64,000 nucleotides of DNA from Heterodontus francisci (lineage: Eukaryota), in contig NW_027142279.1 of the NCBI RefSeq assembly GCF_036365525.1, positions 248,001 to 312,000 of the forward strand. Reading direction: 5' to 3'. The notes beneath the pieces were generated by a model. It saw only the letters and a list, made by a program, of their open reading frames with translations, was not told where the DNA came from and made no database searches. The position numbers and the translations under genes are program-made. Positions 2,239 to 64,000 of the stretch are shown one piece after another; position 1 is the stretch's first letter; every line of letters starts with the position of its first letter.

Positions 2239-2240
2239 CT

Positions 2241-2247
<7 letters not shown>

Positions 2248-2290
<43 letters not shown>

Positions 2291-3086: not shown

Positions 3087-3349
3087 CTTCCAAGCACTAA
3101 TCTGCGCACAGGATACAGATGTCCACTCCCCTTTGTGTGAAGAAGTACTTCCTGACATCACTCCTGAATAGCCTGGCTCGAATTTTGGGTTTAGACCACC
3201 TTGTTCTACCCCCGTGCCCCGCCCCCAACTAGAGGAAGCAGTTTATCTCCATCTCGCCGATCAACCCATTCAATCATTTTAAACACCTCAGTCAAATCAC
3301 CATTTAATCTTCTCTACCCGAGGGAATAAAGAACAAGCAATGTAAACAT
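3087..3349 (-). pseudogene. Candidate disrupted leader exon of the TRBV30-like V, split by a CR1 fragment
   Basis: ATG TTT ACA TTG CTT GTT CT (3349-3330), then CR1-like sequence (~3329-3116), then T ATC CTG TGC GCA GAT TAG TGC TTG GAA G|gtaaat (3115-3087). Rejoined it gives 49 nt, phase 1, MFTLLVLILCAD*CLE. Confidence 0.4.
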
Positions 3350-16806: not shown

Positions 16807-16840
16807 ATGTGGACTCTGCTGATCATTCTGAGTTACCTGA
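16807..16840 (+). CDS. Uromodulin/GP2-like D10C protein, signal peptide exon (exon 2 starts 16792)
   Basis: Acceptor tccctttccag| at 16791, aagATG context, MWTLLIILSYL, phase-1 donor A|gtgagt. Confidence 0.8.
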
Positions 16841-35503: not shown

Positions 35504-35796
35504 TGCAGCTTTGCTGCTGGGATGAAGTTAAACTGAGATATTTGCTGCTTCCTGTTACCTGAGAGCTTATGGTTAAGCTAGAATAGAGAGGACTGTCTTT
35601 GAGCAGTGAGTGGAGGGGGGAGGTTGAGCTGGGAACCTGGTTTAGAGAAGTTGGAAATTTTCCAGCTTTAATCTGGGAGATTTTCTGTCAGGGTAGGAGT
35701 GTGAAACTGAGTTTATTGGTATTTTGGTTGGGTACAAGCCGCTGTGTAACATTACCTGTACTTTTTATTAACTTTCAACATCTTTCTGTCACTCAG

Positions 35797-35941
35797 TCAC
35801 AGACTCCGCAAACACTGACCCGTGTGTAAATCACACAGTCCTGGACCAGCCCTGGAGGAGCATCGATTGTACTGAGACTGAGTGCTCCGGGCAGAAGAAG
35901 TGTGATACAAATCTTGTTCAAGGGTGGTACAGATTTAAAAG
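35797..35941 (+). CDS. D10C cassette 1, exon a
   Basis: ctcag|...|gtaact. ITDSANTDPCVNHTVLDQPWRSIDCTETECSGQKKCDTNLVQGWYRFK carries the DPC/WRS/CD/GWYRF motifs of the UMOD/GP2 D8C domain. An alternative in-frame acceptor would start the exon at 35803. Confidence 0.9.
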
Positions 35942-38709
35942 GTAACTCTGAGAAGGGTGGTAAACAACAAGAGTAGAGCGGGGCTTAAAAACAGAGCGGG
36001 GCGGGTGAGGATTCACTCAGAAAGAGTGGCAGTCAATAAGGTCCGATTACTGATGAGAGAAATGAGTGACGTGGGGAGTGCAGCCAGACCCAAGGCCATG
36101 GCTCCACGGGTGACCCAGCTGTTTCGGGATTACAGCGAAGACTGGAAGAGCAACAGTGATAGGAGATGCCATCGTTGGGGGAATTGGCAAGCATTTCGGC
36201 TGCAGGTGTGAATCCAGGATGTTGTTTTATCTTCCTGGTGCCAGGGTCAAAGATGTCACTGAGCGGTGACAGAGCCCCCTGAGAGGGAAGGGTGAACAGC
36301 TAGCAGTCGTGGTCTGCATTGGCACCAATGAAATAGCTAGGAAGTGGGATGTGGTCCTGCAGTCAATATTCAGGGAGCTGGGTACGATATGAGCGAGAAG
36401 GACCTCAAAATTAGTCATCTCTTGATTACTCCCAGTACCATACACAAGTGAGTTTAGAAATAGGAGGATAGTGCAGATGAATGTGTGGCTGGAAAGATGG
36501 TGCAGGATGGAGGGCTTTAGATCCCTAGACACTGGGACCTGCTCTGGGGGAGATGGGAAGTGTACAGCAGGTATGAATTGCACCTAAATAGAGCTGGGAC
36601 TGATTTCCTTGCAGGCCGATTTGCTCGTGCTATCGGCGACGGTTTAAACTCGCTTGGCAGGGGTATGGGAACCAGGAGGAATTATCAGAGAGGAATACCA
36701 CAGTGCACAGAATACTGAGAGAGATATATAGCCATAGAGTAGGGAATAGTTAGTTATTAGGTGGGGTCAGAGTGAGGGAGAAAGTAACAAAGTCTAAATC
36801 AGTGTTAATTTGACTGTATGTGAATGCACAGAATGTGGTTAATAAGATTGGCATGTTACAGGCGCAGTCTGACTTGTGGAAATATGATGCTGTAGCTGTA
36901 ACAGAGTCCTGGCTCTAAGAGGACAGAACGAAATGTTAAATATTCCTGGGTACAAGGTGTTGAAGATAGATATGAGATGAAGAAAAGGGGCAGGAGTGGC
37001 AGTATTGATTAAGGAGAGTATTGCGGTGTTGGAGAGAGAGGATGTCTCAAGGGGTCAAGGACAGAATCTATTTGGCTAGAGGTACAGAACAAAAAAAGGT
37101 GCAATTACGTTGCTCAGTGTAGTGTATGGGCTACCAATTAGTGGAAAGGAACTAATTTTCAAGGAAATTGCAGAGAGGTTCAAGGATTATCGAATAGTTA
37201 TCATGGGGGACTTTCATTATCTGGAATATTGGCTGGGACAATAGTCGCATAAAAGGCAGTGAGGGGCAAGAGTTCCTAGAGTGTGTTCTGGAAAATGTTC
37301 TTCAACACTATGTTTCCAGTCCAAGGACCGGCGAGGCACTGCTGGACCTGGTTCTTGGGAATGAGGTGGACCAAGTAGATCAAATATCAGTAGGACAACA
37401 TTTAGGGGACAGAGATCATTGTTTCATCATGTTTAGTTTGGCTGTGGAAAAGGACAAAGAACAATCTAGACTGAAACTAATTACTAGGGGGAAGACAACT
37501 TAAATTCGATAAGCATGAAGCTGGGGCAAATAAACTGGAATCAAAGGTTGGCAGGAAAACCGGTTGCTGAACAATTAGCTACTTTCCAAGAAGAGATAGT
37601 TCGGGCACAGTCAAGGTATGTTCCCTCGAAGGGGATCGATACGGTAAAAAAATCGAGAGCTCTCTGGGTGACGAAAGTGATAGAGATGACGATGAAGAAG
37701 AAAAAGCGTGCTTCTGATGGATGTCAGGCAGATAACACAATGGAGAACCAGGCTGAATATGGAAGGCTCAGAGGGGAAGTGAAAAATAAAATGGAGAAGC
37801 AAGAATGGAGTATGAAAAGAGACTGGAAGCGAACACAAAAGGGAATTCCAAAGTCTTCCATATGCATATAAATAGTAAACGGTTGGTAAAAAGAGGAGTA
37901 GGGCCGTAGAAAGGGGTTTTAAACATGGAGGAAGGGAGAATAGCTGAGGTATTAAATAAATACTTTGCACCTGTTGCTACCAAGGAAGAAGATGTTACCC
38001 AGGCCATAGTGAAACAGGAGGTAATTTTTAAAAATAGAATCATTCAGACTTGATGAGCAGGAGATATTAGATAGGGTTTCTGCACTTAAAGCTGATAAAG
38101 CACCAGGACAGGATGGGATGGATCCAAGGATCCTGAGGGAAGTGAGGGTGGAAATTCCGAAGGCACTGGCCACAACCTTTCAGTCTTCCTAAGACTCAGG
38201 AGTGTTGCCAGAGGACTGGATAATTGCAAATATTGTATCCTTGTTCAAAAAAGGGTGTAAAGATAAGCCCAGCAACTACATGCCAGTCAGTTTAACTTCT
38301 ATCAAAAATAATTCGGGACGCAATTAATAGTCACATGGACAAATGCAGGTTAATTCCGGAAAGCCAGCACAAACTTGTTCAGGAAACATTATGTTTAACT
38401 AATATTCTGGAGCTTTTTTGAAGATGTAACACAAAGGGTTGATGAGGGCAATGCTGTTGATGTAGTGCACATGGACTTTCAAAAGGCATTTGATACAGTG
38501 CCACGCAGCAGACTTGTGAGCCAACTTGTAGCTCATGGAATAAAAGGGACGGTAGCAACATGGATAAAGAGTTGGTTGCATGGCCAAAAACAGAGAGTAG
38601 TGGTTAATGGATAAAAACAATATACTGCAGATGCTGGAAATCTGAACTAAAAACAGAAAGTGCTGGAAATACTCAGCAGGTCTGGCAGCATCTGTGGAGA
38701 GACAAGCAA

Positions 38710-38997: not shown

Positions 38998-41796
38998 GAC
39001 TATTACTGAGTCTTGGTTGAGGGAAGGGCATGATTGGCAACTAAATATCCCAGGATATCGATGCTTCAGGCGGGATAGAGAGGGAGATAAAAGGGGTGGA
39101 GGAGTTGCATTACTGGTCAAAGAGGATGTCAGCTGTGCTGAAGGAGGGCACCATGGAGGACTCGAGCAGTGAGGCAATATGGGCAGAACTCAGAAATAGG
39201 AAGGGTGCGGTAACAATGTTGGGGCTGTGCTCCAGGCCTTCCAACAGCGAGCGTGAGATAGAGGTACAAATATGTAAACAGATTATGGAAAGATGTCGGA
39301 GCAACAGGGTGGTTGTGATGGGAGATTTTAATTTTCCCTACATTGACTGGGATTCACTTAGTGTTAGAATTCTAGATGGAGCAGAATTTGTAAGAAGCAT
39401 CCAGGAGGGTTGTCTAGAGCAGTATGTAAATAGTCCAACTCGGGAAGGGGCCATACTGGACCTGGTGTTGGGGAATGAGCCCGGCCAGGTGGTTGAAGTT
39501 TCAGTAGGGGACTACTTTGGGATTAGTGATCACAATTCCGTAAGTTTTAGAATACTCATGGACAAAGACGAGAGTGGTCCAAAAGGAAGAGTGCTAAATT
39601 GGGGGAAGGCCAACTATACCAAAATTCGGCAGGAGCTGGGGAATGTAGATTGGGAGCAGCTGTTTGAAGGTAAATCCACACTTGATATGTGGGAGTCTTT
39701 TAAAGGGAGGTTGATTAGCGTGCAGGAGAGACATGTTCCTGTGAAAATGAGGGATAGAAATGGCAAGATTAGGGAACCATGGATGACAGGTGAAATTGTG
39801 AGACTAGCTAAGAGGAAAAAGGAAGCATCCATAAGGTCTAGGAGGCTGAAGAAAGACGAAGCTTTGAAAGAATATCGGGAATGTAGGACCAATCTGAAAC
39901 GAGGAATTAAGAGGGCTAAAAGGGGTCATGAAATATCTTTAGCAAGCAGGGTTAAGGAAAATCCCAAAGCCTTTTATTCATATATAAGGAGCAAGAGGGT
40001 AACTAGAGAAAGGATTGGTCCACTCAAGGACAAAGCAGGAAAGTTATGCGTGGAGTCAGAGAAAATGGGTGAGATTCTAAACGAGTACTTTGCATCGGTA
40101 TTCACCGAGGAGAGGGACATGACAGATGTTGATGTTAGGGACAGATGTTTAATTACTCTAGGTCAAGTTGGTATAAGGAGGGTGGAAGTGTTGGGTATTC
40201 TAAAAGGCATTAAGGTGGACAAGTCCCCAGGTCCGTATAGGATCTATCCCAGGTTAGTGAGGGAAGCGAGAGAGGAAATAGCTGGGGCCTTAACAGATAT
40301 CTTTGCAGCATCCTTAAACACAGGTGAGGTCCCAGAGGACAGGGGAACTGCTAATGTTGTCCCCTTGTTTAAGAAGGGTAGCAGGGATAATCCAGGTAAT
40401 TATAGGCCGGTGAGCCTGAAGTCAGTGGTAGGGAAGCTGCTGGAGAAGATACTGAGGGATAGGATCTATTCCCATCTGGAAGAAAATGGGCTTATCAGTG
40501 ATAGGCAACATGGTTTTGTGCAGGGAAGATCATGTCTTACCAACTTAATAGAATTCTTTGAGGAAGTGACAAAGTTGATTGATGAGGGAAGGGCTGTCGA
40601 TGTCATATACATGGACTTCAGTAAGGCGTTTGATAAGGTTCCCCATGGTAGGCTGATGGAGAACGTGACGTCGCATGGGGTCCAGGGTGTACTAGCTAGA
40701 TGGATAAAGAACTGGCTGGGCAACAGGAGACAGAGAGTAGCAGTGGAAGGGAGTTTCTCAAAATGGAGACGTGTGACCAGTGGTGTTCCACAGGGATCCG
40801 TGCTGGGACCACTGTTGTTTGTGATATACATAAATGATTTGGAGGAAAGTATAGGTGGTCTGATTAGCAAGTTTGCAGACGACACTAAGATTGGTGGAGT
40901 AGCAGATAGTGAAGGGGACTGTCAGAGAATACAGCAGAATATAGATAGATTGGAGAGTTGGGCAGAGAAATGGCAGATGGAGTTCAATCAGGGCAAATGC
41001 GAGGTGATGCATTTTGGAAGATCCATTTCAAGAGTGAACTATACAGTAAATGGAAAAGTCCTGGGGAAAATTGATGTACAGAGAGATTTGGGTGTTCAGG
41101 TCCATTGGTCCCTGAAGGTGGCAACGCAGGTCAATAGAGTGGTCAAGAAGGCATACGGCATGCTTTCCTTCATCGGACAGGGTATTGAGTACAAGGATTG
41201 GCAGGTCATGTTACAGTTGTATAAGACTTTGGTTCGGCCACATTTGGAATACTGCGTGCAGATCTGGTCGCCACATTACCAAAAGGATGTAGATGCTTTG
41301 GAGAGGGTGCAGAGGAGGTTCACCAGGATGTTGCCTGGTATAGAGGGCGCAAGCTATGAAGAGAGGTTGAGTAGATTAGGATTATTTTCATTTGAAAGAC
41401 GGAGGTTGAGGGGGGACCTGATTGAGGTGTACAAAAGCATGAGAGGTATAGACAGGATGGATAGCAAGAAGCTTTTTCCCAGCGTGGGGGACTCAATTAC
41501 TAGGGGTCACGAGTTCAAAGTGAGAGAGGAAAAGTTTAGGAAGGAAAATGCGTGGAACGTTCTTTACGCAGAGAGTGGTGGGTGCCTGGAATGCGTTGCC
41601 AGCGGAGGTGGTAGACGCGGGCACGATAGCATCTTTAAAGATGTATCTAGACAGATACATGAATGGGCAGGAAGCAAAGAGATACAGACCCTTAGAAAAT
41701 AGGCGACATGTTTAGATGGAGGATCTGGATTGGCGCAGGCTTGGAGGGCCGATGGGCCTGTTCCTGTGCTGTACTTTTATTTGTTCTTTGTTCTTT
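38998..41796 (+). mobile_element. Young CR1 LINE, ORF2 largely open (ORF 39096-41702, 868 aa)
   Basis: APE endonuclease (VVVMGDFN, SDHN) and RT (GVPQGSVLGP, FADD), with a (TTTGTTC)n tail. Frameshifts near 39130 and ~41545. Confidence 0.95.
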
Positions 41797-43045
41797 GACC
41801 TGAAACATTAACTCTGCTTTCTCTCCACAGATGCTGCCAGATCTACTGAGTATTTCCTGCATTTTCTATTATGATTAGTGATTAATGATTGTTTTTCAGG
41901 CTGGAGGAAGGTTTGTCGTGAAGTTCCCCAGGGATCAGTATTGGACCCTTGCTTTCCTTGCTATATACTAAAGACTTAGACCTTGGTGTGCAGGGCACCA
42001 TTTCAATATTTGTGGGTGATACGAAACTTGGAAGGATCGTGAAATATGAGGAGGATAGTGTAGAACTTCAAAAGGGCATAGATAGGTGGAATGGGGGACA
42101 AGTGGCACATGAAGTTCAATGCAGCGAAGATTCATTTTAGTAGGAGAAACATGGAGATACAATGAAAAATGAAGGGTACAATTCTAAAGGGGGTGCATAA
42201 GCAGAGGGACCTGGGTGTATATGTGCATAAATCAATGAAGTTGGCGAGACAGGTTGAGAGCGTGGTTAAATAAAGCCTGCAGAATCCTGGGCTTTATGAA
42301 CAGGGGCTTAGAGTACAAGAGCAAGGAGGTTAAGTTGAACATGCATAAGACACTAGTTTGGTCTCAGCTGGAATATTGCGTCCAATTCTGGGCACCGCAA
42401 TTTGGGAAAGACGCGGGGGCATTGGAGAGAGTATGGAAAAAATTCACAAGAATGGTTCCAGGGATGAGAAACTTCAGTTATGAAGATAGATTGGAGAAGT
42501 TAGGACTTTTGCCCTGAGGGAAAAGAAGGCTGAGGGGTGATTTGGTGGAGGCACTCAAAATCATGAGGGGTCTGGACAGAGTAGATACAGTGAAACTGTT
42601 CCCACTCGTGAAAGGATCGAGAACGAGAGGGCACAGATTTAAAGTATTTGGTAAGAGACAAAAAACCTTTTCACGTAGCGAGTGGTTAAGGTCTGGAATG
42701 GGCTACCTGGGAAGTGGTGGAGGCAGGTTCAATTGAAGTATTCAAAAGGGAATTAGACAGTTATATGGAAAGGAAGAATGTGCAGGGTTACGGGGAGAAG
42801 GCGGGATGGAACAGAACAAATTGTTCATTCAGAGAGCCTGTGCGGACACGATAGGCCGAATGGCCTCCTTCTGCATTGTAACGATTCTGTGATTCTGTGA
42901 TTACAGGTGTAATTTCAGGTGAAATGATCAATAGGGAGGAGTAAGTGATTTGCCCCAGTTTCTGGTACTCTCTGCCGCTACCAGTCTCTCTAACAGTTAA
43001 TAATTACCATCCGTTCAGGGACTGACTCTGTGATTGTTGTTGCAG

Positions 43046-43122
43046 TTCTGGTGGATGGAAGATTCCAGAGACTGTTGTTCCAGCGCGCCAGTGCTCCACA
43101 TATGGCACAGGCTGGTTACAGG
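43046..43122 (+). CDS. D10C cassette 1, exon b
   Basis: ttgcag|...|gtattg. SSGGWKIPETVVPARQCSTYGTGWLQ, phases 2/1 match the neighbouring exons. Confidence 0.9.
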
Positions 43123-43216
43123 GTATTGTCAGATTTTATCATATCAGATTTACATTCACTGTCCAGCACTGCTCACATCGGTTACATTCTTCAATATTTA
43201 TAAACTCTCATTTCAG

Positions 43217-43381
43217 GTTCCCATCCCAGTGTGGGACAAGGGGAAGTAATGGGGACCATTTGTTTTAACTGGAATGAAAATCGCTGCCATTGGACACAGG
43301 AGATAAGCATCAAAAACTGCAGCAGTTATTTCGTTTATGAGCTGAAGCCTCCACCCGGCTGTGACGCTGCTTATTGTACAG
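43217..43381 (+). CDS. D10C cassette 1, exon c
   Basis: tttcag|...|gtagat. GSHPSVGQGEVMGTICFNWNENRCHWTQEISIKNCSSYFVYELKPPPGCDAAYCT. Confidence 0.92.
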
Positions 43382-43769
43382 GTAGATTGCTGTTTCTATA
43401 TGGCCCAGTTGGGTGATTCTAGTATGTCCCGTGTCACCCACAGAAATAAGACTGTTGACTTGCTCTCCTTATTGTAAGGGACACAGTGAATAAAGGATCT
43501 GTAGCACAATGTGAACTTTTCACTGAAGCTCTCGGGAACTGAATCAGATGATGCTGTCTGGAGAGAGGGCTGGAATGTCTCGGGATTTTTCCGTCAGGAT
43601 TGTACTTTAGGTTCTCAGATGAGTGTCGGACATAGCAGCAGGGTCCTGATGGACTGGAGCTGGAGCAGGAACAGGGAGAGATCTTTGCACACCAAACTCC
43701 CATGGATCGTGAGGGTTCCAGGGTGCAGGGCTGTACCTGTATGCTCCCTTTCCCGTGCCCATTGATCGT

Positions 43770-46700
43770 GAGAAGAGTACGAAAACATGAATAGGGAAAG
43801 CAGGAGTGTGAGATATAATAGAGCATTTCAGAGAGAAAGTGAAAGAGAGGAAGGGAATTCAAATTAAGAGAGATGGAACGAGTACAAGAGGGTAGTCTTG
43901 ACTCAAGGGAACATTATGGCCAGGAAGAATCTTAATCCAGCGCAGGACCCAGTGAAAAGCTGTTTAAATTTATACAAGCTCTCCCTAAGTTTGAGGAAAG
44001 GGAAGTAGAGGCATTTTTTTTTAAATAGCCAAACGAATGAAATGGCCAAAGGAAAGCTGGATACTGCTTGTGCAAAACAGGTTAATGGGCAGAGCTCATG
44101 AGCTTTATGCCATGTTTCCTGAAGAGGCTTCTGCAGGTTATGAGATGACAAAAAATGCTATTCTCGATGCGTCTGAGTTAGTCCCTGGAGCTTCCTGACA
44201 GAAGTTTTGTTACCTCCAGAGATTGGCTGGGCAGACTTATATAAAATTTTATAGGGCAAAGAAAATTAATTTGTATCATTGGATACGGGCAGTAAAGATA
44301 GAAGCCACGTATGAGAACCTAAGTGAACTAATTCTCCTGGAAGAATTTAATGTTCACTCACTCCAGTCGTGAGAACTCATGTAGATAACCTGAAAGTTTT
44401 AAAAGCCAGGCAAACAGTGGAAAGTGCTGATGATTTTCAGCTTGTGAATAAGCTAATACCCTTTGTCTGTCAGCACCACAGACCCGAGAAGCATAGAGGG
44501 TGCAAGAGTGAAAGGGAGGAAGTATTCGGGGACAAGAAGGAACAGCTGGTAACGCCCCAGGATCCCCTCTTCAGGCCAGAAAGGAAGGTGCTGAGGGTAG
44601 GAGTGAAGTCCACAAGCCGAAGTGTTATCATTGCCACAGGGTGGGACAGCTTCGCTTAGAATGCTGGAAGTTGCGATGTAAACCCAAAGGACTTGTTGGG
44701 GTAAACAAAGCTAATGCAGAGACAGGGGCTCGGACTGAGAGTACAGCAGAGCAGGCTGTAGCTTTAACGGCAGCTGTAAAAAGCAGATGCAAAAAAAAGT
44801 GAGTGTGGGGGTTGAGAATAGGTACCTGGAAGTTATTATAAATACTTGTCTGAAGGAAAAGCAACTCTATACCCCTCAAGTGAGGAAGGCAAACCTATCG
44901 TTATACTTCGGGTTACAGGAGCAACCCAAACTCTTTTGCTGGGGGATGGTATAACCTTTCCACCAGAGAGCGCACTGAATGCTAAAGCTTTAGTTAATGG
45001 TATTGGCGGGGAGCATATACCCTTCCGTTGTATCATGTGCACCTGGGGTGCAAGCTAATGTTGGGGAAGGTAACTGTCGTACTTGTCCATAGATTGCTGG
45101 GAGACGGAATTGACCTACCCCTGGGGAATGGTTTGGCCGGAGAAGGAATATCAGCTTCTTCCATAGTCAAAGGGAAACCATGTGAAGTTAGAGAAACATA
45201 TCAATTACAGGAACAAGTTCTAGGAATATTTCCTGCGTGAGTAGTAACCCGAGCAAGTTCCATTGTCGGAGATAACATTGGCACCACAAACAGATAGCTG
45301 GGTATCTGAAACTTTCCTTGGGGATTTAGATAATTCAACTGAGATGTTTAACAAATCATCTATAAAGGCAGCACAGCAAGCTGATCCAGAGTTACATGGA
45401 ATAACAGAGTCGGCTCTGACAGAATCAGAGACAAAATGAGTTCCAGAAGGCTATTATGCTGAAGACAGGGTTCTTAGGAGGAAATGGAGACCACCTCATG
45501 GACTTGTGGAAAACTGGAAGGTTGTTCAAAAGGTAGTGGTGCCACCTAAATATCGCCAGGAATTATTAGGGTTGGCAAAAGACATTTTACGAGCATGACA
45601 CATGGCATCTGCAAGACCAAATCACAAAAAAGGCAACATTACTACTGGTCAGGCCTTGAAAAGGACGTAAGACAGTTTTTTAGGACATGCCAGACGTGAC
45701 AAATGGTGGGAAAACTGTAACCTATCATAAAACCGACACTCCTAATTCCCCTATCAGTTATTGAGTAGGGTATTGGTAGATTTTGTAGGGCCATTGCCAA
45801 AAACAAAATCAGGACAGCAATATATACTTACTATCATGGATATGGCTACTCAATCCAAGAGGCCATTCCCTTGAGGACAATTACTCCTAAAGTAGTAGTA
45901 GGAAAGTTAACCCAATTCTTTACGAGATATGGATTACAACTTGAAGTTCAATCGAATCAAGGTTCTAATTTCATGTCGAAGATATTTCAAGAAGTCATGG
46001 TTAATTTGGACATCAAACAGTTAAAATCTTCAGCATATCACCCACAGACACAGGGAGCTCCAGAAAGGTACCATCAAACTCTCCAAACAATAATTCGAGC
46101 ATACTGTCATGAATTCGCCATGATTTGGATTACTTTAATTTGCCAGGAGAGATTCACCAAATGGGTCTACAGATTTCAGCCTTTTCGAATTGGTTTATGG
46201 ACATGAAATAAGAGATCCTCTAAAACACATCAAAGACAGGTTCTCAGAGTGAAGGGATGAATCTTCAATACTAGACCATGTATCTGTGTTCTGGGAAAAG
46301 CTCACAGATCTTGCAATGTGGCTCAGGAACACCTTAAAGCATCCCAAGCCAATACGACAAAACGTTTAGATCCGAAATTTTCAACCCAGGGCTGAAATAT
46401 TAATATTATTACCATTGCAGGGCGAAGTATTAAAAGCTCGGTTCAGTGATCTGTATAAAGTGGTCAAAATAATAATTAAGGTAAATTACTTGATTGACAT
46501 CCGTGACCACCAGAAAAAGGGCTTGTGTCATATCAATATATGAAAACAAAATTATCACAGGGAGGAGGATAAACCAGTTGTCATCCTAGGCCCCCACCTG
46601 CTATAAATGAGGCACATTAATGTTGTCATGAACATTGATTTTAAACTGTTACTGGAGTGAAGAAAGGACTTGTTCAGCAGATCGGCCGTGCCTGGAAAAG

Positions 46701-48400
46701 ACATTTGCATATTAACAGGTGGTGATTGGAAGGACAAAGGGCCATTCCCTAACACATTCAACCCACAATGGACCTTGATCACCAGGTATTGTGTGTAAGA
46801 GGAGCATTCCAGAGACTGCTGCAATCCAAGACGTGGTCAGATCAATTAATCACATGACTAACCCGCTGGGCAACCGGGATTTTTCTGAATTATCCAGCCA
46901 GTTTGAACTCAGCGAGCATGTCCGTTTGCCACTGGTGTGAGAAGATCGCTCCTGGCTGGCTTGCCACAGCCTCTCCTGTCTGCCTGCTCCCATCTCTTTC
47001 TCACAGAACTCCAAATCCACTGAAGATGCATGAACGACAAGAGAGAAAAGTCTCCTACAGCGAACAAGGTTTAAGAAGAATACTTGGCCCCAACAAAAAG
47101 CAAGACCTGCCAACAATCAAGGACTCTACAGTGAGCTCGCAGAACCATAACACAAAAAACTTCTTCAGATTTTGCCTCAAACTTTTCCACTTTATTCACT
47201 CTCTTTCTGTCTCTCTCTGCATGTGGGTATTGCATGTGTGTGTTAGTATGGGCGCGTCCAGTATCCCATGGCATTAACCGAATTAGAGGTTAAGTTTCAG
47301 TTTAATACAATTTCACTTTTCTTCTTTAAAGCTGAGAAAACCTGTTGTGCTGGTTTATTTGCCTTATAATTGGAAAGCAGTGAAAAATTATTCACCAAGG
47401 GGGAGCTGGAAACATAGTGTTTTTTAAAAAGTAAACCTGTTACAGAAAGTCAAGGTGAAGGTTAATAGGGAACCCTAGACCTCTATCTCCTGTCAGAGTA
47501 CAGATATGTCAGGTAATGGGGAATGTTGAGAAGGAAAAGAATAGAGACGATGAGGCAGAAGGAGGCCTCGAGAATTCTCAGATTGAACCTCCTACTATCC
47601 GGTTAGATAATACAGAATGTCTACGAAAATTGGACAACATGCTTTCGTACTTACATGCAGAACAACGAGGCTACTCACAACATTTAAAAGAGTCTGTAGG
47701 GATAAGCCAGGATATATAACCTTAGCCACAGATGATGTGGATGCTCATCAGTTCCTTTAAAACAGTATCCATACTGCGTAAGTCCAGGCAAACAGGCCCA
47801 AGTGAAAACAGCAATCCAATACATGTTGGAGAACAACTTACTTGAATCTAGTCAAAGCAGCTGGAGTTCACCAATGGTATTAGTGCCGAAACCTAATGGG
47901 TCGATCAGACTTTGCATAGACTACAGAAAAGTCAGTGCAGTAACAAAGGCAGACTTCTACCCAATCCTAACTTCGAAGACTGTATTGACAGAATGGGCAG
48001 TGCCATATTTCTTATAAAGATAGATCAGTTAAAGGGATACTACCAAGTTCCTTTGACACCTCGAGCAAAAGAAATGTCAGCTTTTGTCACACCAGATGGT
48101 GTTTATCAGTGCTGAGTAATGCCATTACAGTAACCATACAGTAACCCTAGGAAGGAACACTTAAAACGCTGTTTAAAAAATTAAAAGCCGCTGATTTGGT
48201 GGTAAGTCTGGCAAAAAGTGAATTCGCAAAGTATGAGTGACCGACCTTGGACATATAGTAGTTGTGCTGCCAAGAACTGCAAATGTGCAAGCATTAGTGG
48301 AGTTCCCTATCCCTAAAACTAAGCGTGAAATCATGAGGTTTTTGGGTATATATGACCCAGGAAAAGAGGAGTTGTTACTATCTGTGGAGGAAGACTATTT
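43770..48400 (+). mobile_element. Degenerate Gmr1-like Gypsy LTR retrotransposon (gag-PR-INT-RT order)
   Basis: gag WPKESWILLVQNRLMGRAHELYA (~44043), zinc knuckle CYHCHRVGQLRLECW (~44623), protease ILRVTGA (~44900), integrase 45780-46200, RT SSWSSPMVLVPKPNGSIRLCIDYRK (~47850). A possible solo-LTR insert lies at ~46579-47500. Confidence 0.8.
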
Positions 48401-48439
48401 TGATGAAAGGAAGCCATTGCATTCAAAAGGTGGTAGATT

Positions 48440-49440
48440 CCTATTGCCTCTAGTCTCTGGAGATCCCAGCTATTCACAATATATATTAATTATATAGATG
48501 AGGGAATTAAATGCTCTATATCCAAGTTTGCAGATGACACAGAGCTGGGTGGGAGTACGAGCTGTGAGGATGATGCAAAGAAGCTCCAGTGTGATTTGGA
48601 CAGGTTGAGTCAGTGGGCAAATAATGGCAGATGCAGTATAATGTGGATAAATGTGAGGTTATCCACTTTGGTGTCAAAAACAGAAATGCAGATTATTATC
48701 TGAACGGTGATAGACTGGGAAAGGGGGAGGTGCAGCGAGACCTGGGTGTCCTAGTGCACCAGTCGCTGAAAGTAAGCATGCAGGTGCAGCAGGCAGTTAA
48801 GAAGACAAATGGTATGTTGGCCTTCACAGCGAGAGGATTCGTGTACAGGAGCAAGGATGTATTGCTGCAGTTGTACAGTGCCATGGTGAGACCACATCCG
48901 GAGTATTTTATCCAGTTTTGGTCTCCTTATCTTGGGAAGGATGTTCTTGCTATAAGGGAGTGCAGCGAAGGTTCACCAGAATGATTCCTGGGATGGCAGG
49001 ACTGACGTAGAAAGAGAGATTAGGTCGATTAGGCTTGTATTCACTAGAGTTTAGAAGAACGAGAGGGAGTATCAATAGAAGCCTACAAAATTCTAACAGG
49101 ACTGTACAGACTAGATGCAGGAAGGATGTTCCCAATGGCGGGGGGAGTCCAGGACCAGGGGTCACAGTCTAAGGATAAAGGGCAAACCCATTTAGGAATG
49201 AGATGTGGAGGGTGGTGACCTGAGGAATTCTCTGCCACAGAAAGCAGTTGAGGCCAAATCATTAAATATATTCAAAAAAGAGCTAGATCTAGTACTTCGG
49301 GCTAAAGGAATCAAGGAATATGGGGAGAAAGCGGGAACAGACTACTGAGTTTGGATAATCAGCCATGATCGTATTAAATGGCGGTGCAGCCTCGAAGGGC
49401 TGAATGGACTACTCCTGCTCCAGCTTTCTATATTTCTATG
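48440..49440 (+). mobile_element. CR1 LINE 3' fragment
   Basis: aagtttgcagatgacac (KFADDT), ORF 48631-48984 and a 3' UTR. Confidence 0.85.
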
Positions 49441-50630
49441 ATGAATCCCTGCCTCAAGAGCGATTCCTGATGCACCCTGTGTTTTGGGAGATCCTGAAAT
49501 CGCAAGAAAGAATCCATTGCTGGACTGATACTTCAAAACCCAAGTGCACGTGTTGCTGCACCCTTTTCTGAAAGACCTGTGTGACGCCTGCTGCAGACAA
49601 ATTGCTTTGAACGCCTATCCATCATAGACTGCTCAACAAACTCGCCTGGAGAGACTTCGAGTGGCATCTGGCTATTTGACTCTGGGACAGCTCACCATAC
49701 TGGAAGCATCCTATCAGAATGGAATAAACTCAATCACTTTATTTTCTCCCTTTTATTCTGAAGAAACAGCTGTAAATCTCCCCAGTTAACTTTTTGAATG
49801 TATGTGTGTGTGCATGAATGTTAGGAAGAATGAGAAGTTGGTGGCAAAAACAGAAAGGCAGATTATTATCTGAACGGTGATAGGTTGGGAAAGGGGAGGT
49901 GCAGTGAGACACGGGTGTCCTTTCACATGCAATTATCTCATTATTGTTTAAGACTTGGTATATTAATAAATAGTTGATTTGTATTCATTCAAGAAACCTG
50001 GTTTGGTGTGTTTTATTCTGGGGGACAAATAGCGTGTTTAATTTGGCTACTTTCTGGCTGGTGGGAAGTTTTAACAATATGTTGTGACCTGTGGAGTAGC
50101 AGGACTAAATTAACAGTGCATTACCACCGCCTTGGTCAAAACAAGACTAAATTAAAGGAAGTCCAAAGTAATGGAAGGGATTTTTGTGGCCTGAACAATA
50201 TGGAGAGAGAGGAGGTAAAAGTGCTGAATCTCCTCTGCTTGCATGGAATTCTGCATTCAGAAAGGGGAAGGCTGTTGACAGAGACTGAGATGTGAAGCAG
50301 GGAGTCTCGGAGGGAATGGGCCCTTTGGAATGCAGAAACGGGAGGGGGGATGTGTTTGGTGCCATCAAGTTGGAGGTTACTGAATTGGGGGAGGATGTTC
50401 CATTGATTAAGAAGGCTGGTGGGGTGAAAGGTGTGGATAAATGGGTCCCGATCGTGTTTGATCTTTTGACTGGACACTCGATATAGCCTTGCACCATCTG
50501 ATATTTTGTAATTTATTCTCACCTGCACTCGATCCTATCACAGACCTTTCCTTTGGTTCTTCTTCACATCCTTCCCACTTTCACCTGCTCAAAACCTATT
50601 ACATTTCAAACGTTTCCCAGTTCAGATGTA
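49440..50630. mobile_element. LTR-like fragment (~49440-50143) and Penelope-like fragment (~50145-50630)
   Basis: LTR-like end ...cttggtcaaaaca. Minus-strand PPPVSAFQRAHSLRDSLLH resembles the Penelope ORF linker. Confidence 0.5.
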
Positions 50631-50669
50631 ATATCACATATTAACATTAAACATCTTTCTGTCACTCAG

Positions 50670-50802
50670 TCACAGACTCCGCACTCACTGACCCGTGTGT
50701 ACATCACACAGTCCTGGACCAGCCCTGGAGGAGCATCGATTCTACTGAAACTCAGTGGAAGTGTGATGATGGTCTTCACTTCGGATGGTACAGATTTAAA
50801 AG
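50670..50802 (+). CDS. D10C cassette 2, exon a
   Basis: ctcag|...|gtaatg. VTDSALTDPCVHHTVLDQPWRSIDSTETQWKCDDGLHFGWYRFK. Confidence 0.9.
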
Positions 50803-50954
50803 GTAATGTAAAGGAACAAGTTCAGGATAAACTAGTCAATAAGAGAGGAGTGAGGAATTGTCCCCAGTTTCTGGTATTCTCTACCGGTACCAGTCTCTCG
50901 AACAGTTAATAATTACCGTCAGGTCAGTGGCTGACTCTGTGATTGTTGTTTCAG

Positions 50955-51031
50955 TTCTGGTGGATGGAAGATTCCAGAAACTAGCGTACCAGTGTATCAC
51001 TGCTCCACAGCAAGCCCAGGCTGGTTACAAG
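50955..51031 (+). CDS. D10C cassette 2, exon b
   Basis: tttcag|...|gtattg. SSGGWKIPETSVPVYHCSTASPGWLQ. Confidence 0.9.
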
Positions 51032-51125
51032 GTATTGTTAGGCTTTATAATATTAGATTTATATTCACTGTCCAGCACTGTTCACATCAGTTACATTCTT
51101 CAATATTTATAAACTCTCATTTCAG

Positions 51126-51287
51126 GTTCCCATCCCAGTGTGGGACAGGGGGTCGTAACGAGGACGGTTTGTTTTAACTGGGGTGGAAATCACTGCTACT
51201 GGACCCATGAGATTAGGATCAAAAACTGCAGCAGTTACTTCGTTTATGAGTTGAAGTCGTTATTTTACTGCATTGCTTATTGTACTG
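51126..51287 (+). CDS. D10C cassette 2, exon c
   Basis: tttcag|...|gtacgt. GSHPSVGQGVVTRTVCFNWGGNHCYWTHEIRIKNCSSYFVYELKSLFYCIAYCT. Confidence 0.92.
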
Positions 51288-51690
51288 GTACGTTGCTGCT
51301 TCTATGTCATCCAGAGGGCGATTCTGGGATGTCCCGTGTCACCCACAGAAATGAGACAGTTTACTTTCCCCTTTACTCATTGTAAGGGACACAGTGAATA
51401 AAGGATCTGAAACACAAAGTGTACTTCACTGAAACTCTAGGGAACTGAACCAAACTCTGCTGTCCCTGTCTAGCATGCACTCTGATCCCTGCAGTGTTCA
51501 TGGCTCACGTCAGGTCCCCACTGCAGTGCTGGGCACCTCACACTCCCTCTCCAGGAAGCAATGTTCACGAGGAGTAGGATTGGATCGTCGAGGGTTTGAT
51601 AAAGATGAAAATTTGGCACTGTCTGGACTCGAGTACTAAACACATGAGCTCTTCGGGTTTTCTCCACTCTGCCCTCTTCCTTTATTACAG

Positions 51691-56305: not shown

Positions 56306-58818
56306 GTACCTGCCTTGTGGGGTGATCATCGCAGGATCATGGAATCATAAACTGGTTACAGCACAGAAAGAGGCCGTTCTGCCCATCGTCACTGTGCCAG
56401 CTCTCTGCCTGAGCAACTCACCTACTCCCACTCCTGCCATTTCCCCATCTCCCTGCAGATTGTTTCTCCGATGATAATTATCCAATTCCCTTTTGAAAGC
56501 CTCAATTAAACCTGCCTCCAGCACACTCTCAGACAGTGCATTCCAGATCCTAACCACTCGCTGTGTGAAAAGGTTTTCCTGTCTCTGTTGCTACTTCTGC
56601 CACTCACTTAAAGCTGGTGTCCTCTGGTTCTGGATCCTCACACCAATGGGAACAATTCCTCCCTGTCTACTCTGTCCAGATCCCTCGTGATTTTGAACAC
56701 CTCGATCAAATCTCCTCTTAATCTTCTCTTCTCCAGGAACAAGAGCCCCAGATTCTCCATTTATCCATGTAACTGACGTCCCTCATCCTGGGAACCATTC
56801 TCGTAAATCATTTCCGCACCCTCTCGAATACCTTCACATCCTTCCGAATGTATTAACCGCTCTCTGGACCTGTCTTGCCACCTTCAATGATTTGTGCACA
56901 CGTACGCCCAGGTCCCTCTGCCCCTGCACCCCCTTTACAATTGTATCCTTTATTTTCTATTGCCTCTCCTCGTTCGTCCGACCAAAATGAATCACTTTAC
57001 AATTCTCTGCGTTAAGTTTCATCTGCCACTGTCTGCCAATCCCACCAGCCTGTCTATAACCTCCTGACGTCTATCACTATCCTCCTCACAGTTGACAATA
57101 CTTCCAGGTTTTGTGTCATCTGCAAATTATGAAATTGTGGCATGTACGCCCCAGTCTATGTCATTAATATACATCAGGGAAAACAGGGGTCCGAGCAATA
57201 TTACAGAGCAAAACACAGATGCACAGAGAATTAGGAGGGACAGATAACACTGGAGTAGAAAAGAGTAACGTATTAGCCAGGGACAGTGTAAGAGGGAAGG
57301 TGATGAGCTGTAAATTCAGTTCAATGTGTGTGTATATGAGAATGCAATGAGAGTGGTAAAAAAGGTTGTTGAGCTGCAGGCGCAGATAGCCATGTGGAAA
57401 TATGATGTTGTGGCAATAACAGAGTCCTGGCTCTAAGAGGGGCAGGACCTGGTAGTGAATATTCCTGACTACAATGTGCTCAGGAAAGGGAGGGATGGAA
57501 GGAAAGGAGGAGGGGTATCAGTATTGATAAAGAGGAACATTACAGTGCTGGAAAGAGATGATGTCGGAGAGGAACCAAGGATAGAATCCATCAGATTAGA
57601 ATGAAACAAGGAAAGAAATACCATTACCTTTCTGGGTGTATTCTATAGGCCAACAAGTAGTGGGAAAGATATAGAGGAACAGATTTGCATGGAGCAACCA
57701 AGAAGTGCAAGAGTTAAAGTGTAGATATATCGTTGGGCTTTAGTTATCTGAATATAGACTGGGATAGTAATAGTGTAAAGGGCAGAGAGGGACAAGAATT
57801 TCTAGAGTGTGTCCAGAAGGATTCCCTCCGTCAGTTTGTTTCCAGTCCAACGAGGAAGGAGGCATTGCTGGATCTGGTTCTGGGAAATGTGGTTGGATAA
57901 GTGAATTATGGGTCAGTCGGGGAACATTTAGGGGACAGTGACCATCATATCATGTGGTTTAGGTTGGCAATGGAAAAGGACAATGAGAAATCCGGAGGAA
58001 AGATAATTCATTGAGGGAGAACCAATCTCAGTAGAGTGAGAACAGATCTGACCCAAATAAACTGGAATCATATTATAGACACACATAGTGTGATACCTGA
58101 CGTGCTCAGTCTCAGTGACCCATCCAGTCTCTTACTGATGGAGTGTGGGGAAATGACAGAGGGCAGTGGGATATAATGACCGAGGGGAGTGGGATGTACT
58201 GTCTGAGGGGTGAGGGATGTAATGACTGAGGGGAGAGGGATATAGTGACTGTGGGCAGTGGGATATAGTGAGTGAGGGGAGAGGGATGCAGTGACTGAGG
58301 GGAATGGGACATCGTGACTGAGGGGAGTTGGATATAGTGACTGTGGGCAGTGGGACATAGTGATTGAGGGTACTGTGATAAAGTGACTGAGGGGAGTATG
58401 ATACAGTCACTGAGGGGAGTGGGATGCAGCGACTGAGGGTTGTGTGATAGTGTGACTGTGGGGAGTGGGATACAGTGACTGAGAGGAGTGTGATACAGTG
58501 ACTGAGAGTGTGATGCAGTGACTGAGGGGCGTGTGATGCAGTGACTGAGGGGAGTGTAATACAGCGACTGAGGAGAGTCTGAGACAGCGACTGAGGGGAG
58601 TGAGATACAGCGACTGGCGTGTGCGTGATACAGTGACTGAGGTGAGTGTGATACAGTGACTGAGGGGAGTGTGACGCAGCAATATATTGAACAGGATGGA
58701 AGATAATGGTTTTATATAGATTGTTATCTGTCATTCTCCTGACACGAGCACCATCCTGTTGACCTGTTGTGTTTTTCTCCATGTCTCACTTGGCAATGTC
58801 TCCCTCCCTTTATTACAG

Positions 58819-58914
58819 AACCCGTGACTTCCCAAACTCAGGAATCCGAGGAACAATCGACTCGAGAATCTACTGAGGTTTCATCCTCCACCCCAGCGGG
58901 CTCTGGAAGCTCAG
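58819..58914 (+). CDS. Acidic Ser/Thr repeat exon 4
   Basis: ttattacag|...|gtacct. EPVTSQTQESEEQSTRESTEVSSSTPAGSGSS. Confidence 0.85.
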
Positions 58915-60656
58915 GTACCTGTCTTGTGGGGTCATCATCGCAGAATCATGGAATCAGAGACTGGTTACAGCACAGAAAGAGCCCGTTGAGCCCATCGTCA
59001 CTGTGACAGCTCCATGCCTGTGCAACTCACCTACTCCCACTCCTGCTATTTCCCCGTCGCACTGCAGATTGTTTCGCCAATGACAATTTTCCAATTCCCT
59101 TTTGAAAGCCTCAATTGAACCTACCTCCAGCACACTCTCAGGCAGTGCATTTCAGATCCTAACCACACGCTGTGTGAAAAGGTTTTACTGTCTCTGTTGT
59201 AATTTTTACCACTCACCTAAAACCGGTGCCCTCTAGTTCTGGATCCTCCCACCAATGGGACATAGGGGTGTGGGGCATAGTTACTGGGGGAGAGGGATGT
59301 AGTGACTGAGGGGAGAAGGTTGCACTGACCGAGGTGAGTGGGATATAGTGACTGAGGGCAGTGGGACATTGTGACTGAGGGCAGTGGGATATAGTGAGTG
59401 AGGGGAGAGGGATGTAGTGACTGAGGGGAGAAGGTTGCACTGACCGAGGTGAGTGGGATATAGTGACTGAGGGCAGTGGGACATTGTGACTGAGGGCAGT
59501 GGGATATAGTGAGTGAGGGGAGAGGGATGTAGTGACTGAGGGGAGTGGGACATAGTGACTTAGGGTAGTGGGATATAGTGAGTGAGGGGAGTGGGACATA
59601 GTGACTGAGGGGAGTGGGACATAGTGACTGAGGGGAGTGGGATGTAGTTACTGAGGGCAGCTGGACATAGTGATTGAGGGCAGTGGGATGTCGTGACTGA
59701 GGGGAGTGAGACATAGTGAATGAGGGGAGTGGGATATAGTGAGTGAGGGGAGAGGGATATAGTGAGTGAGGGGAGAGTGATATAGTGACTGAGGGGAGTG
59801 GGACATAATGACTGAGGGGAGTGGGATGTAGTTACTGAGGGCAGTAGGACATAGTGATTGAGGGCAGTGGGAAATAGTCATCGAGGTGTGCGGAACATAG
59901 TGACTGAGGGCAGTGGGACATAATGAATGAGGACAGTGGGACATATTGTCTGAGGGCAGAGGGATATAGTCATTGTGGGGAGTGGGATATAGTCATTGGG
60001 GGCAGTGGGACATAGTGACTGAGGGCAGTGGAACATAGTGACTTAGGTCAGTGGGATATAGTCATTGAGGGGAGTGGGACATAGTCATTGAGGGCAGTGG
60101 GACATAGTCACTGAGGTGAGTGTGATATAGTGACTGATGGGATAGGTATGCAGTGATTGAGGGCAGTGGGATATAGTGACTGAGGGCAGTGGTATGTATT
60201 CACTGCACGGAGTGGGATGTGGTAGCTGCGGAGAGTGGGATGCAGTGACTGAGGTGAGTGGGATACAGTGACTGAGGGGAGTGGGATACAGCGACTGAGG
60301 GTAGTATGATACAGTGACTGAGGGGAGTGTGATACAGTGTCTGAGGGGAGTATGATACAGTCACTGGGGGAGTGTGATGCAGAGACTGAGGGTAGTGTGA
60401 TCCAGTGACAGAGGGAGTGTGAAACAGTGACAGAGGGGAGTGTGATGCAGTGACTGAGGGGAGTGTGATGGAGACTGAGGGGAGCGTGACGCCGTGACTG
60501 AGGGGAGTGTGACATAGTAATGTAGTGAACAGGATGGAAGATAATGGTTTTATAAAGATTGTTATCTGTCATTCTCCTCACACGAGCACCATCCTGTTGA
60601 CCTGATGTGTTTTTCTCCATGTCTCACTTTGCAATGTCTCCCTCCATTTATAACAG

Positions 60657-60752
60657 AACCCGTGACTTCCAAAACTCAGGAATCCGAGGAACAATCGACC
60701 AGAGAATCTACTGAGGTTTCATCCTCCACCCCAGCGGGCTCTGGAAGCTCAG
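60657..60752 (+). CDS. Acidic Ser/Thr repeat exon 5
   Basis: ttataacag|...|gtacct. EPVTSKTQESEEQSTRESTEVSSSTPAGSGSS. Confidence 0.8.
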
Positions 60753-62976: not shown

Positions 62977-63072
62977 AACCCGTGACTTCCCAAACGCAGG
63001 AATCCGAGGAACAATCAACTAGAGAATCTACTGAGGTTTCATCCTCCACCCCAGCGGGCTCTGGAAGCTCAG
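62977..63072 (+). CDS. Acidic Ser/Thr repeat exon 6
   Basis: ttcaatacag|...|gtacct. EPVTSQTQESEEQSTRESTEVSSSTPAGSGSS. Confidence 0.8.
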
Positions 63073-64000
63073 GTACCTGTCATGTGGGGTCATCATCGCA
63101 GAATCATGGTATCAGAGACTGGTTACAGCACAGGAAGAGGCCATTGAGCCCATCGTCACCTTGACAGCTCTATGCCTGTGCAACTCATCTACTCCCACTC
63201 CTGCAATTTCCCCGTCGCACTGCAGATTATTTCTCCAATGACAATTTTCCAATTCCCTTTTGAAAGCCTCAATTGAACCTGCCTCCAGCACACTCTCAGG
63301 CAGTGCATTTCAGATCCTAACCACACGCTGTGTGAAAAGATTTTCCTGTCTCTGTTGTGACTTTTACCACGAACCTAAAACCGGTGCCCTCTAGTTCTGG
63401 ATCCTCGCACCAATGGGACTCAGGGGAGTGGGACATAGTTACTGAGGGGAGAGGGATGCATTGACTGAGGGGAGAAGGTTGCACTGACCGAGGGCAGTGG
63501 GATATAGTGACTGAGGGAAGTGGGACATAGTGACTGAGGGCAGTGGGATATAGTGAGTGAGGGGAGAGTGATGTAGTGACTGAGGGGAGTGGGACATAGT
63601 GACTGAGGGGAGTGGGATGTAGTGACTGAGGGAAGTTGGACATAGTGATTGAGGGCAGTGGGATGTAGTGACTGAGGGGAGTGAGACATAGTGAATGAGG
63701 GGAGAGGGATATAGTGACTGTGGGGAGTGGGACAAAGTGACTGAGGGGTGTGGGATATAGTTATTGAGGGCAGTAGGACATAGTGATTGAGCACAGTGGG
63801 ATATAGTCAGTGAGGGGCGAGGGATATAGTGACTGAGGGGAGTGGGACATAGTGACTGAGGGGAGCGGGACATAGTGACTGAGGACAGTGGGACATAGTG
63901 ACTGAGGGCAGTGGGATATAGTGACTGAGGGGATTGGGATATAGTCATTCAGGGCAGTGGGACACAGTGACTGAGGGCAATGGTACATAGTGACTGAGGG

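Follow-up and report, generated by a model that had tools for sequence, protein, structure and literature searches.

Two probable tandem D8C domains of a single horn-shark gene: mosaic divergence and the choice of a neutral yardstick

Gene structure and domain composition

The locus contains two sets of three exons, described at first as paralogous exon sets, which we consider to be probably two tandem D8C (D10C-like) domains, D1 and D2, of a single secreted protein of the horn shark, Heterodontus francisci; this moderate confidence applies to the whole explanation developed below. All six exon peptides are present, in order, in P0007, a protein of 472 aa named by its source only as an uncharacterized protein of H. 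francisci, which is organized as a signal peptide, D1, D2, an acidic Ser/Thr/Glu stalk and a small tail. Only 18 residues, signal peptide included, precede D1, and the D1-D2 linker has only seven.

All features lie on the forward strand of the window, i.e. of the whole 64-kb stretch of DNA analysed. The signal-peptide exon (16807..16840), found by tblastn of P0007 as an exact peptide match, encodes the first 11 residues plus one base and is followed by GT. Exon a of D1 (35797..35941), placed by tblastn and by alignment with exon a of D2, encodes an NHT sequon and an extra Cys pair, and is followed by an intron of about 7.1 kb that harbours a LINE open reading frame with endonuclease and reverse transcriptase (39096..41699; Pfam scores of 37.2 bits for Exo_endo_phos_2 and 124.7 bits for RVT_1). 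Exon b (43046..43122, 77 nt), the b-c intron (43123..43216, 94 nt) and exon c (43217..43381, 165 nt) complete D1. D2 is encoded by exon a (50670..50802), which relative to its D1 counterpart has a 12-nt deletion, lacks the extra Cys pair and has HHT in place of NHT, by exon b (50955..51031, 77 nt) and by exon c (51126..51287, 162 nt); its a-b intron (50803..50954, 152 nt) is homologous to 42911-43045 from position 50818 on, and its b-c intron (51032..51125) again has 94 nt. The a-b-c unit both starts and ends in phase 1, and tblastn detected no copies beyond D1 and D2 in the window.

The assignment of these exons to the D10C domain, made in the preliminary description, agrees with the Pfam search, in which the exon peptides were submitted singly and not as a joined spliced model: the exon c peptides of D1 (30.6 bits) and D2 (30.0 bits) pass the gathering cut-off of 27 of PF23283 (D8C_UMOD), and the exon a and b peptides alone, four of the six, gave no Pfam match. 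Residues 145-267 of P0007 (D2) align to residues 30-153 of 7p6r_A, the D10C domain of GP2, with an E-value of 2.5e-30, and the alignment to UMOD chains has an E-value of about 3e-29. The D10C fold has nine strands and two 3-10 helices. According to passages of PMC8930769, the ten Cys of D10C are paired C1-C8, C2-C9, C3-C6, C4-C10 and C5-C7. Compared with the GP2 and UMOD domains (7P6R, 6ZS5), the shark domains keep eight of the ten Cys positions and the W-Y-R-F and W-L-x-G-x-H-P motifs, but have Ser/Val and His/Arg at the positions of C3 and C6, i.e. both partners of a disulfide are absent; another pair, encoded in exon a, nevertheless brings D1 to ten Cys; D2 has eight. The position of GP2 N65 is occupied by the NHT sequon in D1 and by HHT, which is no sequon, in D2. 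UMOD N275, which our alignment and passages of PMC8930769 place at GP2 R165, corresponds to Glu in both shark domains. The decoy module of GP2 and UMOD includes a β-hairpin that precedes D10C and forms the glycan groove; the shark protein lacks it, and the P0007-GP2 alignment begins three residues ahead of the DPC motif. Unlike GP2 and UMOD, the shark protein also has no EGF domain or polymerising ZP module, and presents instead two tandem domains on an acidic stalk; the precomputed Pfam list of P0007 comprises PF23283 only, and frog uromodulins in the same table have PF00100 and EGF families.

Divergence of exons and introns

The two copies were compared in a MAFFT alignment of 42880-43600 with 50787-51510. 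Hand counts made from the sequence beforehand proved exact: exon b differs at 16 of 77 positions, 13 of them in amino-acid-changing codons and three in synonymous-only codons, and the b-c intron at 8 of 94. Exon c differs at 31 of 162 positions, in addition to a 3-nt deletion in copy 2. The Cys and Trp residues of exons b and c are all kept, as are the AG/GT splice sites. With the b-c intron as the reference, the exons do diverge faster, as had been claimed (Fisher's test, p=0.027 for exon b and p=0.014 for exons b and c together), but the claim does not hold for the remaining non-coding parts of the duplicated unit. The upstream intron differs at 21 of 135 positions (15.6%) and the downstream intron at 30 of 174 (17.2%); exons b and c (47/239, 19.7%) are not significantly different either from all non-coding sequence (59/403, p=0.10) or from the distal intron, away from splice signals (50/311, 16.1%, p=0.31). 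Four-fold sites differ at 5 of 35 (14.3%), and codons of the conserved third (entropy classes are defined below) that encode the same residue in both copies show a synonymous difference of 4/23.0, or 0.17.

The 94-nt b-c intron is thus a poor neutral yardstick. Its differences are confined to 43130-43180, with seven of the eight at 43130-43172 and one at 43180, and its middle differs at 7 of 48 positions (14.6%), a level no different from that of the other introns (43/263, p=1.0), whereas its last 36 nt are identical in both copies. The low count is therefore due to the invariant 3' end and not to a slowly evolving intron. Joined to the initial 22 nt of exon c, these 36 nt form an identical run of 58 nt (43181..43238, same as 51090-51147), and a run of at least this length was obtained in 7 of 20,000 shuffles. 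No stable RNA fold was detected in the b-c introns (z of 0.15 for D1 and 0.49 for D2), and no Rfam match in 42800-51600.

Two other accounts of these counts were considered and rejected. CpG decay does not explain the exon excess, as non-CpG exon positions still differ at 35 of 217 (16.1%) against 51 of 385 (13.2%) in non-coding sequence, itself a small difference. A dS of 0.5 gave the impression that synonymous sites lie far above introns; the four-fold and conserved-codon values are, however, at intron level, and the high Nei-Gojobori dS results from path-splitting in codons with multiple hits.

Variable patches within a conserved scaffold

Codons were divided into thirds by entropy among 72 domains of other sharks and rays, and pN between D1 and D2 rises from 0.022 in the low-entropy third to 0.083 in the middle and 0.361 in the high-entropy third. 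In the last class nonsynonymous differences amount to 33.8/93.5 (0.36) against 0.16 in the intron (p=7e-5), and the excess persists without indel-adjacent codons (24.2/66.3, p=0.0005). Divergence faster than neutral, proposed earlier for these exons, is therefore found for about a third of the codons, but not for the exons overall (p=0.31, dN/dS 0.47). The replaced codons (n=29) fall at columns most variable in the domains of other species, compared with the kept ones (n=86; Mann-Whitney p=1.4e-8). There are seven triple-hit codons among 121, with about 0.5 expected, and ten double-hit ones; multi-hit codons cluster in the high-entropy third, where they make up 14 of 38. In the amino-acid-identical codons of this third, four synonymous differences occur in 8.3 sites, which are tiny numbers.

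The variable columns among eight horn-shark domains form the same four patches as the troughs of summed contig word depth, a definition that is partly circular in that copy 1 is among the copies counted, with summed depth not equal to copy number. In D2 these are patch A of exon a (50750..50779), with a depth of 217 against 1988-3331 in the preceding bins; patch B of exon b (50990..51019), around the single Cys, with a depth of 183 against 2500-3725 before it and with columns of three to five residue types; patch C1 of exon c (51170..51199), with a depth of 219 and variable columns; and patch C2 at the end of exon c (51260..51287), with a depth of 200, which is domain-type-specific, reading PPPxCxA in three D1 domains and SLFYC-like in five D2-type domains. 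Depth in the patches is thus 183-219. The conserved portions of the exons reach 1400-4000, as do the 3' two thirds of the b-c intron, but intron sequence in its lowest bins (186-271) falls to the level of the patch troughs. Between the paralogous proteins P0007 and P0156, 51 of 239 residues differ in the D8C domains and 10 of 117 in the rest (p=0.0025). The 18 best-supported exon variants, a biased sample covering 40 of 133 places, comprise nine synonymous and nine nonsynonymous changes.

On balance we favour a mosaic-domain account. The neutral divergence of D1 and D2 would be about 15-16%, equal in the distal intron and at four-fold sites; some two thirds of the codons would belong to a scaffold (Cys, Trp, strands) kept by purifying selection, and the remaining third, in the four family-wide patches, would have diverged more than twice as much as neutral sequence, many codons being hit two or three times. 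What sets the exons apart from the b-c intron would then be the patches, together with the invariant branch-site, polypyrimidine and acceptor end of this very short intron. Diversification or specialisation of the two heads, aided by short-tract exchange of patch variants among many family copies, probably underlies the patch excess. Its cause may be positive selection, short-tract exchange or older coalescence of the patches; segments that are older or were exchanged account better than amino-acid selection for the raised synonymous difference of the variable third.

Exchange among copies, selection and decay

It is conceivable, if on the whole unlikely, that no adaptation is involved, the loops being unconstrained, and that conversion homogenised the scaffold and the introns while sparing older patches, or that patches were imported from other copies. 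Besides the raised synonymous difference and the 58-nt identical run over the boundary of the intron and exon c, this reading is favoured by the family tree, in which horn-shark D2 domains join those of four further shark species in a D2-type clade (bootstrap 93, SH-aLRT 96); judging by this grouping, D1 and D2 may have separated much earlier than an intron divergence of 16% would lead one to expect. Both domain types have patch variants of exon a in common, and D1 and D2 of P0156 have nearly the same exon a. In the protein alignment 46 of 231 informative column pairs are incompatible, and in a PHI-like test neighbouring columns were more compatible than permuted ones at a window of three (5/5000), with no signal at windows of five and eight (592/5000 and 1140/5000), this test having been run on proteins, where convergent change mimics exchange. 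On the other hand, an AU test does not reject a single clade of all horn-shark domains (p=0.12), and conserved-codon synonymous sites, four-fold sites and distal introns agree at 14-17%, and thus give no hint of stronger homogenisation in introns than in exons. Sharks accumulate substitutions slowly, so that a divergence of 16% may be reconcilable with an old split.

The preliminary description had proposed positive selection on ligand-facing loops in a host-microbe arms race. As the sole cause of the exon excess, acting by point substitutions, we regard this as unlikely. The expected dN/dS was not observed: the Nei-Gojobori value is 0.47 over all 121 alignable domain codons (Fisher p=0.007 below 1) and 0.36 for exons b and c, and four methods gave 0.51-0.66 for exon b and 0.32-0.56 for exon c. 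Exon a, which the preliminary description does not mention, is the only one to reach about 1 (0.97-1.38), not significantly, with 15 nonsynonymous and four synonymous differences. Codons of the depth troughs have a dN/dS of about 0.94, and the high-entropy third about 0.5 (pN 0.36, pS 0.55). Hence dN exceeds dS in no class save for the non-significant value of exon a, and gene-wide positive selection is absent. Selection in the loops is nonetheless consistent with the robust pN excess of the family-variable third, with near-equal change at codon positions 1, 2 and 3 (22, 20 and 25 of 121), with the non-conservative character of most replacements (negative BLOSUM62 scores for 20 of 30) and with patch B, which differs even among same-type domains of paralogues. 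Relatives also act in defence: GP2 and UMOD are FimH decoys according to passages of PMC8930769, and susceptibility to infection is increased in omc5 mutants of the zebrafish (PMC11415648). Against it, patch C2 is set by domain type in all eight domains listed above, therefore representing an old difference that has been kept and not ongoing change, and the known ligand of GP2 and UMOD binds a glycan in a groove, not protein loops (PMC8930769).

Decay of D2 under relaxed constraint, which would inflate the D1-D2 difference, is improbable. The NHT sequon equivalent to GP2 N65 has been lost in D2, although all 16 contigs aligned at 50702 carry the Asn codon base; the Cys at 50742, kept in ten aligned contigs, has been lost too, the 12-nt deletion has occurred, and the end branch of this domain (0.26) is the longest of the horn-shark D2-type domains (range 0.05-0.13). 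Yet D2 preserves its reading frame, its splice sites, its Trp residues and all eight core Cys, pN is only 0.02 in scaffold codons, and D1, too, has patch sequences of its own and sits on an end branch of 0.17. Finally, a recent gene-conversion tract over the b-c intron as the reason for its low divergence is very unlikely, despite the 58-nt run and the highest family-wide word depth on 51050-51139, as the middle of the intron is as divergent as other introns, neither an RNA structure nor a known RNA family turned up there, and the identical part comprises the branch-site-to-acceptor region and a strongly conserved coding motif, for which constraint suffices.

Relation to other rapidly evolving families and implications

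The genes of snake-venom three-finger toxins reportedly undergo accelerated evolution. Accelerated segment switch in exons (ASSET), described for them in passages of PMC2474615, resembles the shark case in that a multigene family has a conserved disulfide scaffold and intron segments similar among copies, and in that short exon segments are radically changed between conserved ones, as are our multi-hit codons. The shark protein, however, is not a toxin, the two domains compared here belong to a single gene, its exons overall are not significantly faster than introns, and dN/dS is below 1. Hypervariable loops on conserved frameworks are also known from MHC peptide-binding sites and serpin reactive centres, where they were recognized by dN > dS at defined contact sites. 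The shark patches share with them clustered replacements and equal change at all codon positions, but dN > dS was not found.

Another related system is the zebrafish omcin family (PMC11415648), which likewise shows lineage-specific tandem expansion, D10C domains whose number differs from protein to protein and a link to defence against bacteria; omc5, unlike the shark protein, has five D10C domains, EGF IV, a ZP module and a predicted GPI anchor, and in our tree teleost domains form a clade separate from shark and ray domains. A literature search for a shark D8C family found none, and a wider search returned nothing relevant among the matches listed. A bolder proposal, which we consider doubtful, is that the ZP-less shark and ray D8C family could be a germline-diversified recognition or decoy repertoire, in which a rigid scaffold and conserved introns extend over very many copies, four CDR-like patches evolve faster than neutral by selection on short-tract exchange, and the two heads are kept different on purpose.

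As it stands, the case mainly illustrates a pitfall: a raw exon count, set against a short intron whose 3' end is invariant, can mimic a signature of selection that dN/dS does not confirm. If the acceleration of the patches were adaptive, the secreted uromodulin/GP2-type heads of sharks and rays would form a large family that has gone unstudied, with loops diversifying like those of immune receptors or toxins. It would extend the "glycan decoy" idea developed for GP2 and UMOD to protein-surface variation, and, as a single genome contains many copies, the family would be tractable to study.

Predicted gene structure

Self-comparison of the window revealed one duplicated unit, in which positions 42911-43558 match 50818-51464 with 82% identity over 653 columns, and a second match, separate from the main unit, between 35766-35945 and 50639-50806; no third copy of the unit was found within the window. 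Each copy comprises exons a (35797-35941 in copy 1, 50670-50802 in copy 2), b (43046-43122 and 50955-51031) and c (43217-43381 and 51126-51287), and the three-exon unit is in phase 1 at its start and end in both copies. The two exon c peptides exceed the threshold of the Pfam family D8C_UMOD (30.6 and 30.0 bits vs the cut-off of 27), and the four exon a and b peptides, taken each alone, have no Pfam match. A search with the exon c1 peptide among representatives at 50% identity returned 1,155 proteins at E <=0.001. They include P0007 (472 aa), a database gene model that the source names an uncharacterized protein of Heterodontus francisci, in which all six exon peptides are present and in order. 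Judged from the sequence, the two exon sets are predicted to be one gene, not two; a search of RNA runs found none that contains this stretch.

P0007 is composed of a signal peptide, the D8C domain D1, a 7-residue linker, the second D8C domain D2, acidic repeats rich in Ser, Thr and Glu, and a small tail. A word search with 8,000 candidates scored yielded 95 relatives at E <=1e-10, nearly all from sharks or rays and bearing automatic names such as uromodulin-like, GP2-like, OIT3-like or mucin-5AC-like; five of the relatives are additional horn-shark proteins. The C-terminal tail of P0007 has no match within the window, so the gene probably extends beyond the window's end. A second public model of the gene on the same contig, P0152 (573 aa), has both D8C domains identical to those of P0007, and departs from it by a low-complexity, Leu/Ser-rich stretch in stalk and tail that looks like translated intron or a different frame. 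The annotated signal-peptide exon (16807-16840) precedes exon a1 by about 19 kb, and the first intron spans tandemly repeated units that give chance tblastn matches every ~4.2 kb in the 21-34 kb region. Three places (58815-58949, 60653-60787 and 62970-63107) match the P0007 stalk repeats at 91-93% identity.

The a-b intron is ~7.1 kb long in copy 1 vs 152 nt in copy 2, and much of this gap is explained by a LINE, whose intact-looking 868-aa ORF (39096-41699) encodes an endonuclease and a reverse transcriptase. Pieces resembling the LINE flanks recur on the other strand at ~53 kb, 57 kb and 59-63 kb. Three ORFs in the c1-a2 intron (43559-50638), at 45871-46206, 47802-48497 and 48631-48984, resemble fragments of retroelement pol, and none of them matches Pfam at E <=0.001.

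Relationship to GP2 and uromodulin

D2 aligns to the solved D10C domain of GP2 with E of 2.5e-30, and both shark domains were compared through this alignment with the disulfide list and glycan sites in PMC8930769. By the cysteine scheme given there, the C3-C6 pair of GP2 and UMOD is missing from both shark domains; D1 nevertheless has ten cysteines by virtue of another pair, located in exon a, whereas D2 has eight. The shark protein also has no space for the beta-hairpin half of the GP2/UMOD decoy module, and the database family list records neither an EGF nor a ZP family for P0007. At the position of GP2 N65, which according to PMC8930769 bears the FimH-binding glycan, D1 has the sequon NHT and D2 has HHT. 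This change of Asn to His (50702) removes the N-glycan sequon from D2, which has also lost a Cys at 50742, accompanied by a 12-nt deletion in which the likely partner of that Cys disappears. The Asn codon base and the Cys base are kept in 16/16 and 10/10 of the contigs aligned there (run X1), so both losses look specific to this copy.

Divergence of exons and introns

The preliminary description stated that exons b and c diverge faster than the b-c intron, and its counts for exon b and the intron match ours: 16 of 77 positions differ in exon b, 8 of 94 in the intron and 31 of 162 in exon c. The flanking introns of the unit, however, are more divergent than the b-c one (21/135 upstream, 30/174 downstream), and the exons compared with all non-coding sequence of the unit give p=0.10. 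Divergence within the b-c intron is uneven, with no difference in the 6 nt of the donor, 7 in the middle 48 nt (14.6%) and 1 in the last 40 nt. Across the boundary between intron and exon c (the final 36 nt of one, the initial 22 nt of the other) the two copies are identical for 58 nt, a length beyond chance (7/20,000 shuffles); the intron RNA shows neither a notable fold nor an Rfam match. Intron sites distant from splice signals differ at 50 of 311 positions (16.1%), from which exons b and c together (19.7%) are not significantly distinct (p=0.31), and at four-fold degenerate sites the figure is 5/35 (14.3%). The neutral level is therefore ~15-16%, in exons and introns alike.

Over 121 codons, counted per exon and then summed, dN is 0.176 and dS 0.372, so that dN/dS is 0.47 (Fisher p=0.007), and exons b and c alone give 0.36. 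Per-exon estimates by NG86, LWL85, YN00 (exon a only) and ML range from 0.97 to 1.38 for exon a, from 0.51 to 0.66 for exon b and from 0.32 to 0.56 for exon c. The dN/dS above 1 that diversifying selection would leave in exons b and c is thus not borne out, and apart from the non-significant range of exon a no partition has dN > dS.

Excess divergence in four patches

We ranked the codons by column entropy across 72 D8C domains from other shark and ray species, a ranking independent of the D1/D2 pair. pN rises from 0.022 in the low-entropy third through 0.083 in the middle third to 0.361 (33.8/93.5) in the high-entropy third, which exceeds the intron level (p=7e-5); it does so also without the codons near the two indels (24.2/66.3, p=0.0005) and in exons b and c only (14.2/49.0, p=0.04). 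The replaced residues fall at high-entropy columns (p=1.4e-8), and all three bases differ in 7 of the 121 codons vs ~0.5 expected. Comparison of eight horn-shark domains puts the variable columns in the same four patches, namely A in exon a2 (50750-50779), B in exon b2 (50990-51019), and C1 and C2 in exon c2 (51170-51199 and 51260-51287). The patches are also troughs (183-219) of summed contig word depth, which was taken from the DNA contigs that four runs on a single sample gave, matched at 80% likeness, and does not equal copy number; it reaches ~1,400-4,000 over conserved parts of the exons and over the b-c intron in its 3' two thirds, and the lowest bins in intron sequence (186-271) drop to patch level. 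The D8C domains of P0007 and its horn-shark paralogue P0156 differ at 51/239 residues, against 10/117 for the remainder of the two proteins (p=0.0025). Divergence in the patches has outpaced the neutral level.

Origin of the variable patches

Selection, exchange of short tracts and older coalescence may each have caused this excess. The depth troughs have a dN/dS of 0.94, and pS in the high-entropy third is 0.55, a value inflated by path-splitting. Codons identical in amino acid carry 4 synonymous differences in 8.3 sites of the high-entropy third vs 4 in 23.0 of the conserved third, and these raised synonymous differences, in tiny numbers, hint at patches that are older or have been exchanged. 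Within each domain type C2 is fixed across the paralogues, and variants of the exon-a patch are common to both domain types. In P0156, D1 and D2 have nearly identical exon-a parts, and the parts from exons b and c are type-specific, a pattern that suggests exon-level homogenisation within the gene. Incompatibility affects 46/231 pairs of informative columns; columns close together exceed permuted ones in compatibility at a window of 3 (5/5,000), but not of 5 or 8. In the tree the horn-shark D2-type domains group with D2 domains from four further shark species (support 93/96), and a single horn-shark clade is not rejected by the AU test (p=0.12). Nine of the 18 exon variants with the best support in the contig alignments are synonymous, in a biased sample that covers 40 of 133 places. 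Positive selection is not yet the reading to adopt, because no partition has dN > dS, C2 is fixed by type, and variants are shared and columns incompatible.

The literature search turned up no study of this shark family. Among described phenomena, accelerated segment switching in toxin exons (PMC2474615) comes closest, and among described gene families the zebrafish omcins (PMC11415648) do. The observation in the preliminary description is confirmed, and its proposal of positive selection on ligand-facing loops stands in part: the patches did outpace neutral change, but the exons cited for it fall short in dN/dS, and the exon/intron contrast that inspired it is made up of an invariant intron end together with four patches that vary across the family, set in a strongly conserved scaffold.
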